This document shows, one piece after another, positions 18,833-41,106 of a DNA stretch of 64,000 nucleotides. Position 1 is the first letter of the stretch. Each line of letters opens with the position of its first letter. The position numbers and the translations under genes were made by a program. This DNA comes from Hyphochytrium catenoides. Taxonomy: Eukaryota; Protista; Hyphochytriomycota. The notes under the pieces were generated by a model. The model was not told the origin of the DNA. It was given only the letters and a program-made list of their open reading frames with translations, and did not search any database. The stretch is from positions 1 to 64,000 of the forward strand of contig FLMG01000683.1 in NCBI GenBank assembly GCA_900088475.1, written 5' to 3'.

Positions 18833-21304
18833 ATGTCCACAAAGAGGAAGGTCCCTACAGGGGCTGAGGAGGACGGAGATGCAGATGGTGCTCCTCCTGG
18901 CGACGTGATGACTATCATGCCCCTGGGAGCGGGAAATGAAGTTGGTAGATCCTGCATCATTCTCAAGTTCAAAGGCAAAACAATAATGCTGGACTGTGGC
19001 ATTCACCCCGGCTACTCGGGCATTGCTGCTTTGCCCTTCTTTGACGAAATAGATGCAGAGGAGATAGACCTTCTCCTTGTGACGCACTTCCACCTGGACC
19101 ATGTGGCGTCTCTGCCTTACTTCACAGAGAAGACAAAGTTTAGAGGGAAGATCTTTATGACTCACCCTACCAAGGCGGTGATGCAGATGATGCTTAGGGA
19201 CTACGTGCGGATCAGCAACATTGCGGCTGAGGACCAACTTTACACAGAGAAGGAGCTAAACAACTGCATAGAGAAGATAGAGACAATCGACTTCCATCAA
19301 GAGAAAGAGGTCAATGGAATCAAGTTCTGGCCTTATAACGCTGGGCATGTGCTGGGAGCGGCTATGTTCATGATAGAGTTTGGCGGTGTGCGAGTGCTGT
19401 ACACAGGAGACTACTCCCTGGTGGACGACCGACATCTGATGGCTGCTGAGCTCCCTTCCGTCCCACCCGACGTGCTTATCGTAGAGTCTACTTACGGCGT
19501 GCAGGTCAGATAAGGAGCCCTGCAGACTGTTTCAGCTGTCAAGCGCTCTTGCTTTGCTGCTCCACTATTTTGGCCACGCCAAATGCTTTTCTTCCCCCTG
19601 TTCTGCTTTTTCTCCAATGTGCCTCTCTTTTCTGTTCTAGGACTGGTATCCTGCTATCTTTTCTTACACCATGGTACCTGCTAGAACTATAGGACATACG
19701 CTCCGTGCATTGTGGTTACGCTGCTCTTCACTGTCCAGCACGTTGCTCATTCTGCAGCTCCTAACACGTCACATCTGCAGGTCCATGAGTCTATCAATGA
19801 GAGGGAGGCCCGGTTTACGGGTCTAGTAGAGTCCATCGTCCGCCGAGGTGGCCGCTGTCTCATCCCATCGTTCGCCCTGGGACGATCTCAGGAGCTTCTA
19901 CTCATCCTTGACGAACATTGGAGAGCCAACCCAGACCTGCATGACATCCCCATATATTTTGCCTCTAAGATTGCCGCAAAAGCTCTTAGAGTGTACCAGA
20001 CCTACGTTAACATGATGAACGAGAGAATGAGAAAGCAGATCGCCGTGAGCAACCCCTTCCGCTTCCAGTTCATCCAAAACCTGAAGTCGCTGGAAGACTT
20101 TGATGACTCTGGGCCTTGCGTAGTCATGGCGAGTCCTGCGATGTTAGACAGCGGCGTCTCGCGGGAGCTGTTTGAGCGGTGGTGCACTGACAGAAAAAAC
20201 GGCTGCATTATTCCTGGATATGTGGTGGAAGGAACGTTGGCGAAGAGAATCCTTTCGGAGCCACCAGACATCACAGCGCTAGACGGTCGGATCCTGCCTT
20301 TGAACTGCAAAGTGGCATATATCTCCTTCTCAGCTCACGCGGACTTCGTACAGACCAAAGGGTTCATTGACAATCTCAAGGTGCCGCCAAATATTATCTT
20401 AGTTCACGGGGAGCATAACGAGATGTCAAGGTTGAAGTCAGAACTCACGAAGAAGTATAAGAACAAGCAGAATCCACCTAACATCCTCACTCCAGCCAAC
20501 TGCGTGGAGGTGAAGATTGTCTTCAGAGGTGAGAAGACAGTCAAGGCGATCGGCAGGCTAGCGAACAACAAGCTTGTAGAAGGGCAAAAATTCCAAGGTT
20601 TGGTGGTGCAACACGACTTCAGCAGCCACATGCTCGCCCCCGAAGATTTGCCCACCTACACCCAGCTAACCATGAGCAAGGTCACTCAGAAGCAGCACAT
20701 TGCCTTCTATCAGAGCTTCGATGTGCTTAGGGCTTTTATTGAGCAGATGTATGAGGAGGTTGTGGAGGACTCTGTCAAATCCGAGTCTACGGGCAGCCCG
20801 GCAGAAAGAAAGCTCTGGGTCTGCTCCCACGTAGCTGTCATCTTTACACCTGGCAAGGTCGTTTTGGAATGGCCTGCCTCTCCTGTCAACGATATGGTGG
20901 CAGACTCACTGATTGGCGTTATCATGCAAGCTCAGGCTAGTCCGTCCTCGTTTAAGCTCTCCAAGCCCCCGAAGTGCGATCACTCAGGATGTAGAGCCGT
21001 CAATGCGGATGCAGGTCCAGCCGTGAAGAAAGAGGTGGAAGCAACGGTGGAGTTGTATACAGAAGAAGAAGAAGAAAAGATCAATCTGCTGGTGGTCTAC
21101 CGCCTGCTGCAGCATCACTTTGGGCATGGATGTAAGCTGAATGAGAAGACTGACATTATTACTATCGAGATGCCAGAGGGACAAACAGCCTCTATTGATC
21201 TGGCCAACAAGGGAATAGATTGCGAGGATGAAAGCCTACGGGAACGCATCAAGGAGCTGCTCAGACGGCTGGAGACTGCCCTGTATCCTATCCCAGACGA
21301 GTAG
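18833..21304 (+). CDS. CPSF3: Cleavage and polyadenylation specificity factor 73 kDa endonuclease (CPSF3/YSH1); two exons, intron about 19505-19780
   Basis: [19 protein letters not shown] metallo-beta-lactamase motif, [42 protein letters not shown] and a C-terminal W...NDMVADS domain. Confidence 0.97.
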
Positions 21305-22410: not shown

Positions 22411-23466
22411 ATGTTCGAGGAGGTTCTGGCGGACGAAGAAGAGGACCGTCATGAACAAGTGCCTGTGGTCGTCGCTGAGGTACAACCGAAGCAGTGTGGT
22501 GCCCTTCTCAATGAGCTCCAGGAGCTGCTGCCATTGAAGGAGGTGGCGCTTGGCCATCTTCGCAGGGTGAAGAAGGTCCAGGATGCCGATGCCAATGGTG
22601 CTCCAAAGCTGCTCGTGCTCTTAACATCAGAAAAGGCGTGGGCGTCCCTACCGGCGGATACAAAGCTTCACATAACGTCATCATACTCGACGGTTGTCTC
22701 ACATGGCTTTGAGGTGCCTCGGTACCCGTCCAGCACCAGGGCGGAGTACGAGATCGCAAGCAGAATTTGGCCGATGTCCTTCCACCCTTCCACTACCATA
22801 GAACGGGAGAACGTTTCAGCGGAGGAGCTCTCATCAATGCTGAACTATCTCTCTCAAGCTTTGGAAGATGCACAAGGAACTTCCTTTCTTCTTCACGACA
22901 ACTCTGGCTGTTCATTCTCCGGAGGGGTGATTGTAGACCCAGCATTGAACTCTGTCATTGCGGCTGCAGGGACCATTGAGATGCTCGCGGGCTTCCCTTT
23001 TCAACATACAGCTATGCGTTGCATTGAGGGAGTGGCGCTTCGGGATAGGAAAAAGCGCCTTCAGCTCTCTTCGGGCCATAGAACGACGGGAGAGCCAACA
23101 AAGCCGCCGCCAAAGAGAGCTCTGAATTCAGCGCCATCTTCCACCATAAGCAATGGTGGGACTACTGCCGACAACTCGTATCTGTGCACTGGTTATGACA
23201 TCTATCTCTTGCGAGAGCCTTGTATAATGTGTGCTATGGCGCTACTGCACAGCAGAATCCGCAGAGTTGCTTATGCTCTCAGCAACCCGGAGACTGGAGC
23301 ACTGGGTTCACAGTTCAAACTCCATTCCAACCGTGCACTCAACCATCACTTCAGGGTTTTCCAGTGCACAGACTCAAAGCTACTTCGTGACGTTACTGCG
23401 CTAATGTCAGCCAAAGATCAGTTGATAGGCAACAACGCGCCACAAAGCAGAGAGACAGAAGAGTAG
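22411..23466 (+). CDS. TAD3: tRNA-specific adenosine deaminase, non-catalytic subunit TAD3/ADAT3; intronless
   Basis: HLRRVKK, WPMSFHP, QHTAMRCI (catalytic Glu of HxE absent), YLCTGYDIYL, EPCIMCAMALLHSRIRRV and LNHHFRVF. Confidence 0.93.
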   Translation: MFEEVLADEEEDRHEQVPVVVAEVQPKQCGALLNELQELLPLKEVALGHLRRVKKVQDADANGAPKLLVLLTSEKAWASLPADTKLHITSSYSTVVSHGFEVPRYPSSTRAEYEIASRIWPMSFHPSTTIERENVSAEELSSMLNYLSQALEDAQGTSFLLHDNSGCSFSGGVIVDPALNSVIAAAGTIEMLAGFPFQHTAMRCIEGVALRDRKKRLQLSSGHRTTGEPTKPPPKRALNSAPSSTISNGGTTADNSYLCTGYDIYLLREPCIMCAMALLHSRIRRVAYALSNPETGALGSQFKLHSNRALNHHFRVFQCTDSKLLRDVTALMSAKDQLIGNNAPQSRETEE

Positions 23467-29235: not shown

Positions 29236-32200
29236 CTCCCACTCTTGCTCAGTCCATGCCGCTGAGCGAGTAGAGACCAGCTTTAGCTCGAAGGTCTTCA
29301 AAGGCAGGAGCTGGGAGAGATTTGGTAAGGAGATCAGCAATCATGACTTTGGGCAATGAATGATAGAGATCTCTCCGCTTTCTTGTCGCTCTCGGACAAA
29401 GTGATGGCGGATAGCGATGTGCTTCGTCCTTTGGGGGAAAACGGGATTCTTCACCAAGTCAATAGCGCCGCGATTGTCTTCCATAAGAGTTGTAGGAGAG
29501 CGTTGCTCGAAGCCTAAATCAGTCAGAAGTTGACGAAGCCAAATAGCTTCCTGTACTGCTGTTGATGCAGACATGTACTACTCGGCGGTTGCTTTTTGCT
29601 CTTTCAGGAGATTGGACCACCACAGAGCATGAAGATGTAACCAGAGGTGGAACGTCGATCGTCTGGGCTGTTGCCCCAGTCAGCATCAGCGTAACCAAGA
29701 AGTCCCAGTCCGTTGGAGTCTGAGGCTTTAAAGCAGAGACCTAGGTGAGTTGTGCCTTTGAGATACTTGAGCACGCGTTTAACTGCCTGCCAATGGGCAT
29801 GACTAGGCTTGGAGAGATGACGGCTAAGAACTCCCACTGAGTGTGCAATGTCCGGTCTTGTACCAGTCACAGCGTAGATAAGTTCCCCGACTGCGCTGCG
29901 GTAAGGCACTTCTTCAGGCAGAAGATCCTTTGAGTCCGCCTGTTTCAATTGCTGCCCTGGTTCCATTGGGGTCTTGACCGGGTTGCTCTCTTTCATGTTA
30001 AACTTTTCTAACAGCTCTTGCACGTAGGAATGTTGAGTGAGGAAGAGAGTCTTCTTTGTTCTGTCTCGAACGACTTGGAGTCCCAGGATGTATGAGACTT
30101 CTCCTAGATCTGACATCTGAAAACGCTGAGAGAGGTTTTTTTGAGGGCTTTGAGTTGTTCCGCCGAGGTTGCTGCCAACAGTAAGTCATCCACATATAGT
30201 ACAAGGATGAGGAGTTGCTGATCGGACCGTCTGAAAAGAGCCGCCTTTATGGATTGAAACAAGCCGACCGAGAATGGAACCATGTAGACGCAGCTGTACG
30301 CCTTTGAACGGGAGAAGCCTTGCTCCGTGAGGAAGCTGTCGATTACATGGTTCCATTCTCGGCCGGCTTGTTTTAATCCATAAAGGCTCTTTTTCAGCTT
30401 GCAGACTGTAGCTTCTCAGTGCCGGGCTTAATCAAACCGGGAGGTTGCTTCATGTAGATGAAGCTCCATGTCCAGATGAGTAGCAATACCCAGGACCGTA
30501 CGTATGGACGTGAACTTTGCCACTGGGGAGAAAGTCTCTGTGTAGTCAATCCCTTCTCTTTGTCGGAACCCTTGAGCGACTAAGCGCGCTTTATACTTAG
30601 CTATGGAGCCGTCGGGGTTTTCCTTGATCCTTAGCACCCACTTACAACCGATTGCATTCCTCCCACTTGGAAGTGGTACAAGGTCCCAAGTGCCATGGTC
30701 GGTAAGGGACTGGATCTCGGCTTGGGCTGCTTGTTGCCAAAGAGAGGCGTCAGGGCGTTGGAGGGCTTCGGCATAAGTAGAAGGAGCTTCGGTAAGCTGG
30801 GAAGCAGGGGTGGTAGTTCCTTTCCCAGAGCACACCCTTCACAGTCGGGAAGTCTCCCACTGGCTAAGGGAGGTAGGCCAGTAGCGACAGAAGGTAGGGG
30901 ACGAATATTGTCGACGCCGAGGTGGCCGGTACGACGGTGCCAGAGAGAGGGAGAAGAAGAAATAGAGCTGGGGGTGTTGGCGAGAAAAGCACTAGGGGGA
31001 GGAGAGGGGGAGAGCACAAAGAGCTGGTCTTGTACGTAACCTTGGGCATATGTTATGCGAGTAGAGGGGTCGCGGAAGAGAACGTTGGCGCCAGAGAAGA
31101 CGGCTTCAAGGCCATGGGCGGTAGCGGCGGAGACACTGAGGAGGTTTTTGGCCAGCTCGGGTATGTATAGGACGTTCAGGAGTTGGATGGTGGAGGATTG
31201 ACCATCAACGTCAACAGAGAGAAAGATGTCGCCGCGACCAGTGGTGGTGACAGAGCGGTTGTCAGCGGCGTAGACTGGGGTGGGATCCGTGGGGTGAAAG
31301 GTAGTGAACCACTCCCGTTGGCAGGTCATGTGGGTGGTGGCTCCGCTGTCAATGAGCCAGATGGTTGGCTCCTGGAGGGCTGGAGGCGTAGAATGAGTGG
31401 CGGCGAAGGCGCAGGGCTGGCGGGAGGCTTCGTCTCGTTGCTTCTTCCGGCAATCGTGCAGCCAGTGGCCGGGCTTGTGGCAGTAATCGCAGACGCCTTT
31501 GCGCTGCGGAGGGGTCAGGACCGCCGCGTTGAGTCACATTAGCGCTGCGGAAGCGCACCTGTTTCAGTGGTCGTGCTTTGACGTCTGACACGGCGTATGC
31601 TCTCGTGCCAGGGTAGGTATGGGCCTTCGAAGGGGAGTCAAGGCGACGGGCCTCTTCGTTGAGGAGGCGGGCCTTCAAGAAGTCAATAGACAAGTCATCT
31701 GGTCGGCTTTCAAGGGCTGTGACCAGGGAGTTGTAACTGTCAGGTAGGCTGTTCAGGACGACAAGCACTTGCTCGTCCTCGTCAATAATGACGCGGATGG
31801 CCCGTAGCTTATGGAGTAGGGTGGCCATCCGGTTGAAGAGCGCCGTGATGCTCTCTTCATCAGCCATGCGTAACTGCAGGAGTTGCCTGCGGAGGTAGAT
31901 TTTGTTCGCGAGGACTGGGGTCTCGTACTGGCGCTAAAGGGCTTGCCAGGCTTCGTCAGCAGTGGTGGCGCTGCGGACGTGAATGAGCTGGTCGTCGTCT
32001 ATGGAGAGGACGATAGCTGCCAAGGCTTTGACGTCCTTGGCCTTGTCAGAGACCTTGAAGGTAAGGTCTAACGCTTCAGCGCTCTCAGCAGTCTGGGTGC
32101 TGGACTTCTCGACGCTGGATGAAGAGATGGCACCGCTGGGCTCGTTGATACAGTGACGGAGGTCCTTTTCCACGAGGACCATGAGCATCTTAAAGTTCCA

Positions 32201-37879: not shown

Positions 37880-40369
37880 CTAAAAGTAGGAAGACAGACA
37901 GGGAGCGCGAGAGGAGGAGCTTCTGTTTCCTTCCTTGTAAGGTCTCTTTTGCCGCCTTCCCAAGCTAGGGCCTTCGTCCTCAAGCAGACAGGACCCTGGA
38001 GCGGTTATCTTCTTGGAAACATCCGAGTCCTCTGCAAGCCAATCATCTCTATCTTCCGACGCGATACAATGACGGAGGACAAGAGTCCGGATAGAAAAAA
38101 GAAGGCTTTTTCTCAACACACCCAGGGTTTGTGCGTCGCCACTTGCGTTATCGTCAGGGACACAGACTTCCCTCACGATCTCATAGAGTTTTACCAGTTG
38201 CTCCTTGACCGTTCTTCGTATGTTGTCATCCTCGGTGGGTGTATGTTCTGTTCCTCTCAGCGAGGCCGCTTCCTCCTTGATGATGTAGCTATAGACGTGC
38301 TCAGAGTGGCACTCCTCCGCGGTAAAGTTCTTTCCTCCTAGGTAACCGATTTCTCTTAGCATGTCACGGGTAAGGACCACTTCACTGTCTCTCTCCGCCC
38401 TCCGAGAGAGGTAAAGCTCTGCAAGAAATAGCAGAAGGCGGAGCTGGAAGTTCAGCCTCGGGCTCAGGAAAAAGCTCTTCCGAAAAGCAATTTTAGCCAA
38501 TCCACCTAACGAAGGCGTGTGATGGACCCGCTGACCTACCGTTCTCTCCCAAAGAATCTCTATTCGGAGATTGAGTGGATCACCAAGGCTGTTCACGATC
38601 TCTGCCCATGAAAAGTAGTTGGTCCAGGCTGAGCGAATCTCGGCCAACAGAAAAGGAAGAGAATTAATTGGAGCCCGATGTTCTCTCCCTACGCCATCAC
38701 TTTCCCTCTCACTTTGGCTCTTCGAAGAGCAAGAAAAGAAGTCGAGCGGGGTTAAAGGAGAATGAGCTATTATACTCCTTGCTGAAAGCTCTGCCCGCAG
38801 AGAGAACTCTGTCTTTAGAGAGTCATAGAGAAGTGCCCAGTTCCTATTTCCTAGCTTGTTCATAGCTTTCAACACCGATCTCTCGGTTGTAACGCCAAAG
38901 AGGCTGGCCCCAAGATCGTCCGGAGCTACGCCTTGAGCCTGATCCGCCATTTGCCGTAGGGTTCTCCTTAGCCACTCCCATCCACCGCCAAAGGACTCCC
39001 ACTCTCTTTTCCTCTTAAGATCCAAGTAATAGACTTTTGCCAAAAAGTACCAATCCTTCTCGCCCTGAGACGTGGGAAGAGAAAGGGCGGCAATAGAGTC
39101 CGCCGTAAGCCTTCCCCGTCCTGCTTCCCCACGTTCCTGGGTTGTGCACGTGACTTGCTTGACGGATAAAAGGGTAGAGTAGAGCTTGGTCGTGCTGCCT
39201 GAGGACGAGGTTAGGGAGCCCGTAGTAGCTTGGCTTCCTCGTTCTCCACTTTCCTGTAGTCCAGAGGTTCTCGGCAGCTCAAATGCGCACATCTCACAGA
39301 CTTCAGAATCTCTTCTGGCTTGTATGAGGCCACATGCAGGGCAAATACGAGTGCGGGCTCTTCTTCCCGCAGCATCTCCTCCCTGACCCATTTCGTCTCT
39401 TCCTCTTGCCTCATCTCCTCTTTCTTCTGCCGATGCAGTCCTACGCCGATCATCCGAAAGAGAGGAAGCGCCAGCACCGGCGCCATCTTCCGTCTTCTCC
39501 AAGACGTAGCTTCGAATCACGTACTTGTTATCAAGATACTGCGTCGCGCTGGACTTAGCAATAGAAGAGAGCACAGACTCCCAGAGACTACCTCTCTCTG
39601 CTCTCACATAGAGGCGCTTAGAAAGGCAGCGGAAGACCAATATGTCAGGAATAGAGACAAAGAGAAGGATTGCCTCTATCAGCTGGTCAGGAAGGCCTGC
39701 AGTGAAGGAGAAGGAGTCGTCTTGACGAGAGAACGCCCTGTCTCTCTTGGCGAACAGCACCAGTTGTTCACTTCCCTTTTCCGCCTTAACCTCTCCCGTC
39801 TCCTCCCTATTTGCCTCCTCACCTTGACCGGAAGGAATCTCACCCTCCTCTCTGCCCACTGTCATGTCATCCAAGTCACTTAAGTCTTGCAGGTCTTCCT
39901 TCTCCTGCTGAAGCTGTCTCGCCAGCTCATTCTCCTGCGCCTCCTCCCATCGCTCTCTCTCTTCATGGAGAGCAAAGATCTTGGCCCTCACCTTCGGCTC
40001 CTCGAAGTCGCAGACAGCACATGCTGAGGATATGCTATCAAACGCGTTCACAAAGGAACAGCGCTGACATGTCCAGGTTGATAAGGAGGAAGAAGGCTCT
40101 CTTCGACGACGCTTATTTGGCTGTTGTCGTTTCTCCCCCGGACTGATAGAGAAAACTTTGAAGATCCCGGTCTCGGCTTCCTTCTTTAGCCCCTTCTGGG
40201 GCACGGAAGGTAGAGGCGAGAAGGGAAGCAGTGCACCGTGGAAGCGCTGTTCAGAAGCTAAAGTAGAGTCTTCTCGATGGAGCGGCGCGGCTGGGGAGAG
40301 AGAAGAGGACGGAGAGCGGACCGGAAGATGGATCTCAAACCCTGAAGAGAAGAGTCGTTTGGTTCCCAT
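37880..40369 (-). CDS. F-box protein with RanBP2/NZF-type zinc finger(s) and a putative cullin-repeat-like C-terminus; intronless, 829 aa
   Basis: WTCQRCSFVN...CAVC (NZF); ENELARQLQQE (MIU-like); LPDQLIEAILLFVSIPDILVFRCLSKRL...SLW (F-box); CPACGLIQ...CEMC; cullin-like helices in the C-terminal third. Confidence 0.85.
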   Translation of the reverse strand: MGTKRLFSSGFEIHLPVRSPSSSLSPAAPLHREDSTLASEQRFHGALLPFSPLPSVPQKGLKKEAETGIFKVFSISPGEKRQQPNKRRRREPSSSLSTWTCQRCSFVNAFDSISSACAVCDFEEPKVRAKIFALHEERERWEEAQENELARQLQQEKEDLQDLSDLDDMTVGREEGEIPSGQGEEANREETGEVKAEKGSEQLVLFAKRDRAFSRQDDSFSFTAGLPDQLIEAILLFVSIPDILVFRCLSKRLYVRAERGSLWESVLSSIAKSSATQYLDNKYVIRSYVLEKTEDGAGAGASSLSDDRRRTASAEERGDEARGRDEMGQGGDAAGRRARTRICPACGLIQARRDSEVCEMCAFELPRTSGLQESGERGSQATTGSLTSSSGSTTKLYSTLLSVKQVTCTTQERGEAGRGRLTADSIAALSLPTSQGEKDWYFLAKVYYLDLKRKREWESFGGGWEWLRRTLRQMADQAQGVAPDDLGASLFGVTTERSVLKAMNKLGNRNWALLYDSLKTEFSLRAELSARSIIAHSPLTPLDFFSCSSKSQSERESDGVGREHRAPINSLPFLLAEIRSAWTNYFSWAEIVNSLGDPLNLRIEILWERTVGQRVHHTPSLGGLAKIAFRKSFFLSPRLNFQLRLLLFLAELYLSRRAERDSEVVLTRDMLREIGYLGGKNFTAEECHSEHVYSYIIKEEAASLRGTEHTPTEDDNIRRTVKEQLVKLYEIVREVCVPDDNASGDAQTLGVLRKSLLFSIRTLVLRHCIASEDRDDWLAEDSDVSKKITAPGSCLLEDEGPSLGRRQKRPYKEGNRSSSSRAPCLSSYF

Positions 40370-40639: not shown

Positions 40640-40708
40640 GGAAGAGAGAGCAAGAAAGGGAGAGGGAGAGAGGGAGAGAGAGAGAGAGAAAGAAAGAGAA
40701 AGAGAGAG

Positions 40709-40747
<39 letters not shown>

Positions 40748-40748
40748 T
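40640..40748. repeat. (GA)n microsatellite upstream of the F-box gene
   Basis: Visible simple repeat. Confidence 0.85.
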
Positions 40749-41106
40749 CAGAAAGCAAGCTATTGTTTTGGCGTAACACCTTATGATCAAGTCGGAGAGA
40801 ATCGGGAATAAGCTCCATAAGTTAAGTCCGATCGGCGATAGCTCTGAATGGAATAATGAATCCATGTCCAGTGTAAGTAATGTTGGTGTTCTGTGTTTGG
40901 AAGACTCCACAAAGGCGACAGTGAGTGCGGCACTGGATGACAGATCAGATGTGTATCCTGTCATAAGAAGACGGCCACTGCACCCTTCATAAAGCACCAA
41001 GCTTGAGGCTTGAGGCTTGAGGGAGGCAGCACTGGTGCCTTGACAAGGAAGGTCTACCTGCTGCAGTCTCGTAAGGATTCAGTGGGAAGCTGCCGAAGGA
41101 GGAGGT

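Follow-up and report, generated by a model that had tools for sequence, protein, structure and literature searches.

An F-box protein of Hyphochytrium catenoides represents a conserved family with a predicted cullin-stalk-like C-terminal domain

A single open reading frame (ORF) on the reverse strand of contig FLMG01000683.1 of the hyphochytrid Hyphochytrium catenoides (assembly GCA_900088475.1; positions 1 to 64,000 were analysed and are called the window) encodes an 829-residue protein in which an F-box is followed by a C-terminal domain with the predicted fold of the cullin N-terminal stalk. SCF (Skp1-cullin-F-box) ubiquitin ligases are defined by two components, the F-box receptor and the cullin scaffold, which as a rule are different proteins. 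The domain order, its conservation in a family of relatives, the F-box and the cullin-like fold of the model were all computed here, and we consider it more likely than not (about 60%) that these proteins form a conserved F-box family in which a stalk resembling cullin repeats 1 and 2 would serve as a receptor module on Skp1. A full-text literature search for F-box proteins with a cullin repeat, a cullin-like domain or a cullin repeat-like domain returned no description, none of the 18 Toxoplasma F-box proteins is listed with a cullin-like domain (PMC6685633), and family members are annotated no further than "F-box", all of which agrees with the preliminary description of this sequence, where the architecture was thought to be undescribed. 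What is new would be a family of FBXO-type F-box proteins whose receptor domain is a cullin stalk; no annotation as such was found for it.

Relatives were collected with a word-indexed search and then with an exhaustive HMMER search, in which residues 430-829 were compared with 1.84 billion proteins. The word-indexed search returned a single relative, an unnamed 1019-residue Ectocarpus protein (P0001, E = 4e-17), which is 31% identical to residues 439-647 of the query and contains, in order, a W.C..CTF.N finger, an F-box-like motif, a CGLIQ...CEMC finger, a long C-terminal region and a further block near its end. When residues 430-829 alone were submitted to the word-indexed search no relative was retrieved, low-complexity words having swamped the candidates. 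The exhaustive search yielded 13 representatives (E = 3e-9 to 8e-4), none of them closer. Named members of the family come from the brown algae Ectocarpus and Hapterophycus and from the chromerid Vitrella, and the rest are metagenomic eukaryotes or eukaryotes assembled from the Sequence Read Archive. An F-box is present in most of the full-length HMMER matches, and a RanBP-type finger in two; the Vitrella protein is annotated as "F-box domain-containing protein", and no member was annotated as cullin-like. The short members (350-405 residues) consist of the F-box and the C-terminal domain alone, separated by a few residues, as in P0036, where the F-box ends near residue 112 and an MPTA (MLP-type) block starts at residue 122. 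Look-ups in the ESM Atlas gave either no usable match or only F-box clusters below 0.9, and an exact look-up of member P0008 found no contig.

An alignment of 17 family sequences (A1) revealed four conserved blocks within the C-terminal region: block A at residues 430-472 (MLP..dW......W..l..GW.WL), block B at 495-533 (v.KL..r.W.LLYDSLK.E..LqAE), block C at 572-646 (aW..Y..W...V......LN..i..ER....HTP.v.E.a..AFR) and block D at 722-765 (VpDD.l....Tq...r..llP), with variable low-complexity inserts between them. Across the family the F-box and the stalk form an obligate pair. As judged from these alignments, the 829-residue protein is a member of a conserved, unannotated stramenopile/alveolate F-box family, whose core would consist of the F-box and a diverged homolog of the cullin N-terminal stalk (repeats 1 and 2), to which the long members add a RanBP2/NZF-type finger and a second Cys4 ribbon. 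The arrangement is therefore not a one-off, since the same domain order recurs in Ectocarpus, Hapterophycus, Vitrella and metagenomic eukaryotes.

The reading frame is open across all 829 codons and is by far the longest ORF of the window, in agreement with the preliminary description of one intronless ORF, in which every quoted string was found in its place. It could be argued that two neighbouring genes, or a fragment of a cullin pseudogene, have been read as one ORF through an error of annotation or assembly, and the 829-residue protein as such is indeed absent from a collection of 15 billion proteins. We regard this as highly improbable, because the frame is uninterrupted, independent genomes and metagenomes show the identical domain order (among them two members that are uninterrupted ORFs on contigs of 31-39 kb), the conserved blocks cover the entire length of the protein, and the true cullins of the genome sit on other contigs. 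In a scan of the genome (61.0 Mb, 4759 contigs) with the family hidden Markov model (HMM), only the gene itself and one F-box match were recovered, and no second copy was found. The occurrence of the same architecture in independent relatives, together with the single copy at home, indicates a conserved family rather than a one-off fusion or an assembly artefact, and on sequence grounds the ORF is a genuine single-exon gene.

The C-terminal region (residues 430-829, numbered in the model from residue 1) was modelled with AlphaFold2. Without an alignment the predicted local distance difference test score (pLDDT) was 36. With A1 the mean pLDDT was 74.7 and the predicted template modelling score 0.75, 166 residues reached a pLDDT of at least 90, and the model was entirely helical, its confidence dropping only at two inserts and in the tail. 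A Foldseek search of the PDB with this model placed the N-terminal domains of CUL2, CUL5, CUL3, CUL1 and CUL4B first, with probabilities of 0.8-1.0 over 340-400 columns. VIA-align, which is independent of Foldseek, was run against 48,161 representative chains, and ranks 1-9 were all cullins (Z 10.1-13.3), the next folds being Exo70 (Z 8.0) and the Munc13 MUN domain (Z 7.9); Exo70, Munc13 and Cog5 together ranged from 6.9 to 8.0. When VIA-align was applied to the top 1000 chains from Foldseek, the top 50 were all cullins, with Z up to 14.8. Thus both structural searches were headed by the N-terminal domains of cullins, as expected if the C-terminus resembles their adaptor-binding end.

The superpositions keep a constant register. 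Model residues 26-354 align with residues 25-262 of CUL3 (8gq6_C, Z 13.3), model residues 29-336 with residues 15-275 of CUL1 (1ldk_A, Z 12.7), and model residues 28-216 with residues 7-159 of CUL2 (4wqo_D, Z 12.4), in the last case at a root mean square deviation of 2.4 A for 131 of 141 residues with 17% identity. In the ranking of the 48,161 chains the match starts at cullin residue 7-25 and, in chains that extend past repeat 1, runs to residue 257-285; over both VIA-align runs the alignments continue to model residues 336-354, equivalent to cullin residues 262-293. The preliminary description had recognised repeat 1 alone; repeat 1 is covered, and the extent has to be revised to about two repeats, the second of which is modelled with a pLDDT of 80-94 outside its insert at residues 661-706. 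A third cullin repeat is absent from the predicted model. Likewise the cullin C-terminal part (Rbx1 binding and neddylation, PF10557) is lacking, as had been noted before, with only 40 low-complexity residues after the stalk, too few to accommodate it, and no Pfam match to Cullin or Cullin_Nedd8, and therefore the protein is not a cullin and would be the carrier of a cullin-like stalk. Because cullins hold all of the top ranks, the register is constant and the sequence signals described below agree in place and order, we consider it very probable that residues 457-783 have the cullin-stalk fold, and probable that this predicted likeness reflects homology.

The sequence evidence for kinship with cullins is consistent and colinear, and it lies below threshold. 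Four strings within residues 511-674 had been proposed to match cullin repeat 1 in order. Three of them fall in conserved blocks B and C, and the fourth, RRAERDSEVVLTRDMLREI, compared with the cullin motif ER.GE, lies in a variable insert modelled with low confidence and is not conserved. The family alignment was compared by hhalign with an alignment of 10 cullins (A2), for whose retrieval a cullin of the same genome had served as the query. The sole match placed query residues 573-640 on helices H4-H5 of repeat 1 (fL..y..W..y......lF.YLnRywi...vy.v..l.l.iw) with a probability of 12.9% (P = 0.0022), in line with the placement given in the preliminary description, and a re-aligned, domain-only version gave 5-11% (P = 0.003-0.009). 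The real score was 29.9, compared with a maximum of 20.6 (median 12.3) in 300 column-shuffled family alignments and 16.8 for the reversed alignment. Additionally, the Pfam Cullin profile matched the short members P0036 and P0011 (E = 0.11), aligning residues 233-321 with profile positions 42-122 of 620. In P0036 this stretch runs from "RLYESV..." to "...AFRDHVVL", which assigns block B to cullin H3 (LY..LK) and block C to H4-H5. The 829-residue sequence by itself was not significant against the cullin profile (P = 0.78), with its best alignment at the same place; it has no Pfam Cullin match at E<=10, and a six-frame PF00888 scan of the genome skips its contig.

Several of these results weigh against reading the domain as a cullin stalk that acts as a receptor. 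All of the cullin sequence signals are sub-threshold (hhalign probability 5-13%; Pfam 11.7 bits against a gathering cut-off of 33.2), and the family HMM, searched against PDB sequences, gives no cullin at E<=10 and F-box proteins only. Block-wise hhalign is ambiguous as to whether the "W.LLYDSLK" block corresponds to cullin H2 or H3, with the Pfam range in P0036 favouring H3. Under that mapping the equivalent of H2 ("aV.KL..r") is unlike the H2 consensus of A2, and therefore binding of Skp1 or a BTB protein in the manner of cullins is not implied, H2 being the main adaptor contact in cullins. The structure is itself a prediction, built on a shallow alignment of 17 rows.

A possible alternative is that the C-terminal domain is an unrelated helical repeat, either of the CATCHR (complexes associated with tethering containing helical rods)/Exo70 type found in Rcy1 or an ordinary alpha-solenoid, which would resemble cullins through convergence or an artefact of modelling. 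Cullin repeats and exocyst helical bundles have been placed together among the "cullin repeat-like" folds, and Exo70, the MUN domain and Cog5 do appear behind the cullins in the ranking. The low hhalign probability fits this explanation, as do the Foldseek E-values (at least 0.017, none below 0.001) and TM-scores (template modelling scores) of 0.3-0.46, and VIA-align warns that for helical repeats Z values below about 13 can arise by chance, without kinship. However, cullins filled the first 9 places of the wide search and the first 50 of the re-alignment, exceeding the CATCHR proteins by 2-5 Z units; the alignments run in register from the cullin N-terminus, with CUL2 superposed as closely as described above; hhalign and Pfam independently converge on one cullin segment, with matching order; and at a limit as loose as E<=10, Pfam matched Sec10 or Exo70 in 0 of the 17 members. 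An unrelated helical repeat is therefore, in our view, distinctly unlikely.

The F-box that had been read from the sequence was borne out, as it passes the Pfam cut-off (Table 1) and the family profile matches solved F-box proteins among PDB sequences (E = 2.7e-8 to 1e-4), with FBXW7 (E = 2.7e-8), FBXL5 and Skp2 all at 6e-5 or lower. With the single sequence, the F-box of Skp2 was a weak match (E = 1.1). Pfam F-box or F-box-like matches were obtained in 11 of the 17 aligned members, most of them under the gathering cut-off. The same genome encodes the organism's Skp1 (102 bits) and, in a six-frame PF00888 scan, four ordinary cullin loci, all on other contigs, so that canonical SCF parts exist beside the 829-residue protein. 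The best cullin gene (L001, G000:C2453:1-4268) comprises an N-terminal exon, covering H1-H4 of repeat 1, and a second exon of 697 residues; its product is closest to oomycete cullins, at about 38% identity. The intron of this gene is CT-rich and falls within repeat 1, between the start of H4 and the FSYLNRYW motif.

The N-terminal part of the protein had been thought to hold several ubiquitin-binding motifs. Finger 1 was called RanBP2/NZF through its homologs only, in which the column pattern of this type is conserved (W.C..C(T/S)(F/Y/L).N......C..C in the alignment of the long members); the finger of P0006 reaches the PF00641 cut-off (27.2 bits against 27), and that of P0013 scores 14.8 bits. 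The query's own finger falls below this threshold, PF00641 not being reported by Pfam even at E<=10, and the best PDB sequence match of the region was weak (the HOIL-1L NZF and the following helix, E = 0.24). Npl4-type NZFs bind ubiquitin through a signature of a TF dipeptide and a hydrophobic residue. Finger 1 has SF...V at these positions, the V lying between the last cysteines, which comes close to that signature, and homologs have TF...G, TF...V, TY...M or TL...A; the N-x8-C loop of the query is 2 residues longer than in the NZF pattern W-x-C-x2-4-C-x3-N-x6-C-x2-C. The assignment as an NZF is putative for the query itself. The helix ENELARQLQQE, which had been taken for a ubiquitin-binding helix of the MIU (motif interacting with ubiquitin) type, is present as a string, but its L-A-x-x-L core was kept in no aligned homolog and no Pfam match to UIM (ubiquitin-interacting motif) was obtained; what the long members have in common here is limited to a charged helix and an acidic L.D.LED stretch, and ubiquitin binding by the helix is not supported. 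The second Cys4 finger, also predicted beforehand, is conserved in the long members with the consensus C.VCGLIQA....CE(M/F)C and an invariant C361, and it matched no Pfam family above threshold. With the MIU helix unconserved and finger 2 matching no family, the proposed set of ubiquitin-binding motifs therefore shrinks to one plausible NZF.

Table 1. Features of the 829-residue protein and their positions in the window
Feature	Residues	Position in window	Strand	Basis
Single-exon ORF	829 plus stop	37880..40369	(-)	ORF list; colinear with Ectocarpus P0001 from finger to C-terminal tail
Zinc finger 1, RanBP2/NZF type by homologs, WTCQRCSFVNAFDSISSACAVC	99-120	40010..40075	(-)	Pattern W-x-C-x2-C-S-F-x-N-x8-C-x2-C
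Charged helix ENELARQLQQE	146-156	39902..39934	(-)	String present
F-box	222-268	39566..39706	(-)	Pfam PF00646, 20.9 bits against a cut-off of 20.5 (residues 226-255)
Zinc finger 2, Cys4 ribbon, CPACGLIQARRDSEVCEMC	343-361	39287..39343	(-)	Conserved in long family members
"(M)LP" block and helix 0	431-456	39002..39079	(-)	Block A; model helix at residues 11-27, pLDDT >90
Predicted cullin-repeat-1-like five-helix unit, with disordered insert at residues 537-570	457-645	38435..39001	(-)	CUL2 superposition, hhalign
Predicted cullin-repeat-2-like unit, with variable low-confidence insert at residues 661-706	646-783	38021..38434	(-)	Structural alignment, block D
Low-complexity C-terminal tail, last residue aromatic	790-829	37883..38002	(-)	pLDDT <50; end lines up with C-terminal ends of P0001, P0003 and P0013 in the 17-sequence alignment

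To account for this architecture, we suggest that the F-box would dock the protein onto Skp1, while the cullin-like stalk would take the place of the leucine-rich repeat (LRR) or WD40 receptor of other F-box proteins and bind a partner or substrate, and the N-terminal finger may add affinity for ubiquitin. The partner of the stalk might most plausibly be a protein of the BTB/Skp1 fold, either a third protein or the protein's own Skp1, a suggestion that follows from the usual ligands of cullin repeat 1, which are adaptors of the BTB fold (Skp1, Elongin C and BTB proteins). In one version, the protein would be an SCF receptor that presents such a BTB/Skp1-fold partner.

Alternatively, repeat 1 could bind the Cul1-docking face of the protein's own Skp1/F-box module, or that of a second copy in a head-to-tail arrangement, so that the domain would cap its own complex; Cul1 would then be excluded, and the outcome would be a non-SCF Skp1 complex or the sequestration of Skp1, possibly on ubiquitinated cargo recruited through the NZF. 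The domain corresponds to the end of the cullin that holds Skp1/F-box in SCF, the alignments starting at residue 15 of Cul1 and residue 7 of CUL2, and the F-box and stalk are paired throughout the family, directly adjoining in the short members. Cullin N-terminal fragments devoid of the C-terminal domain have a dominant-negative effect, in that they trap modules of adaptor and receptor, which sets an example for such an activity. There are also precedents for non-SCF complexes of Skp1 and F-box proteins: Roy1 has been described as a non-SCF F-box protein, and in Rcy1 an F-box is combined with a helical domain that resembles Sec10 (PMC2175155). Against such capping, the helix equivalent to H2 is without recognisable residues of the cullin H2 consensus, the partner may have changed after a very long divergence, and the short linker of the minimal members may prevent the stalk from folding back onto Skp1. 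We consider capping unlikely, and prefer the reading of the stalk as a receptor module. The broader suggestion that goes with it, of a natural "pseudo-cullin in cis" targeted by the NZF to ubiquitinated proteins, and hence of an ancient intrinsic control on SCF assembly that stramenopiles and alveolates have both kept, is similarly doubtful.

Comparison with known systems places the family between cullins and F-box proteins of the FBXO class. As in the N-terminal domain of CUL1-CUL5 (PF00888), residues 457-783 of the model superpose on repeats 1-2 of CUL1, CUL2, CUL3, CUL4B and CUL5 (Z 10-14.8), and motifs are held in common in the same order: W..L in H1, LY..LK in H3, W..Y......LN in H4 and (F/W)R in H5. 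Unlike cullins, the family lacks a third repeat, a cullin homology/winged-helix C-terminal domain, an Rbx1 site and a neddylation lysine, the adaptor-contact helix H2 is not recognisably conserved, and the Pfam score is far under threshold; moreover, it adds HTP before H5 and VPDD...TQ in repeat 2, and the domain is fused behind an F-box. In FBXO-class proteins, too, the F-box is N-terminal or central and a domain for protein interaction comes after it, whereas here the receptor position would be filled by a cullin-repeat stalk. Finger 1 shares the Cys4 spacing and the W.C..C(T/S)F.N pattern of NZF/RanBP2 fingers (Npl4, TAB2, HOIL-1L), differing in the loop that is two residues longer, in Ser for Thr in the TF dipeptide and in a score below Pfam reporting.

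The nearest precedent for an F-box joined to the helical-bundle domain of another machine is Rcy1, together with Schizosaccharomyces pombe Pof6, in which the C-terminal part shares homology with Sec10, a subunit of the exocyst (PMC2175155). In contrast to Rcy1, no member of the family has a Sec10/Exo70 Pfam match, and exocyst-type folds reached a Z of at most 8, compared with 13-15 for cullins; Rcy1 in turn has a CAAX box and no zinc fingers, unlike the 829-residue protein. Rcy1 acts with Skp1 outside SCF. A further likeness is to engineered dominant-negative cullin fragments and to partial cullins of the CACUL1 type, which also present a stalk without the C-terminal domain of the catalytic side; in contrast to these, the stalk described here is natural, appears anciently diverged, has two repeats only and is covalently joined to an F-box.

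A possible apicomplexan member was seen in Toxoplasma FBXO7 (TGME49_275780, 978 residues; PMC6685633, supplementary S1 Fig/Table), the F-box of which reads LPDDLLCEMLLFL at residue 211; the counterpart string of the 829-residue protein, at residue 226, is LPDQLIEAILLFV. The two strings are alike and occupy comparable positions, and FBXO7 could be a candidate for membership in the family.

In the surroundings of the gene, a long CT-rich microsatellite (CTCT/TTCT runs) lies at window positions 40640-40790 (-), about 300 bp upstream of the start codon, and similar runs fill the intron of the cullin gene L001. Elsewhere in the window, the ORFs at 18833-19513 and 19712-21304 (18833-21304, +) jointly encode an mRNA 3'-end endonuclease of the CPSF73 type with metallo-beta-lactamase, Beta-Casp, RMMBL and CPSF73-100_C domains in Pfam, presumably as two exons split by a short intron. 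A 351-residue ORF at 22411-23466 (+) has a C-terminal cytidine/deoxycytidylate-deaminase zinc-binding region, with MafB19-like deaminase as its best Pfam match (E = 2.9e-9). At 30631-31329 (-), a 232-residue ORF has two domains of a copia-type long terminal repeat (LTR) retrotransposon, Pol beta-barrel and GAG-pre-integrase, and sits within the most GC-rich 2-kb stretch of the window (0.553).

A conserved family in which a cullin stalk without catalytic function is joined to an F-box suggests that Skp1 complexes may be built or regulated in a way that has escaped notice, with self-capping, competition with Cul1 and the recognition of BTB-fold proteins as possible roles. If the pseudo-cullin did act in cis, the result would be a Skp1 complex that excludes Cul1 and is not an SCF, or a Skp1 sink at ubiquitinated targets. 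The family may be a natural counterpart to the dominant-negative cullin fragments made in the laboratory. Its members come from a large branch of eukaryotes to which brown algae belong, as does a chromerid closely related to the apicomplexan parasites.

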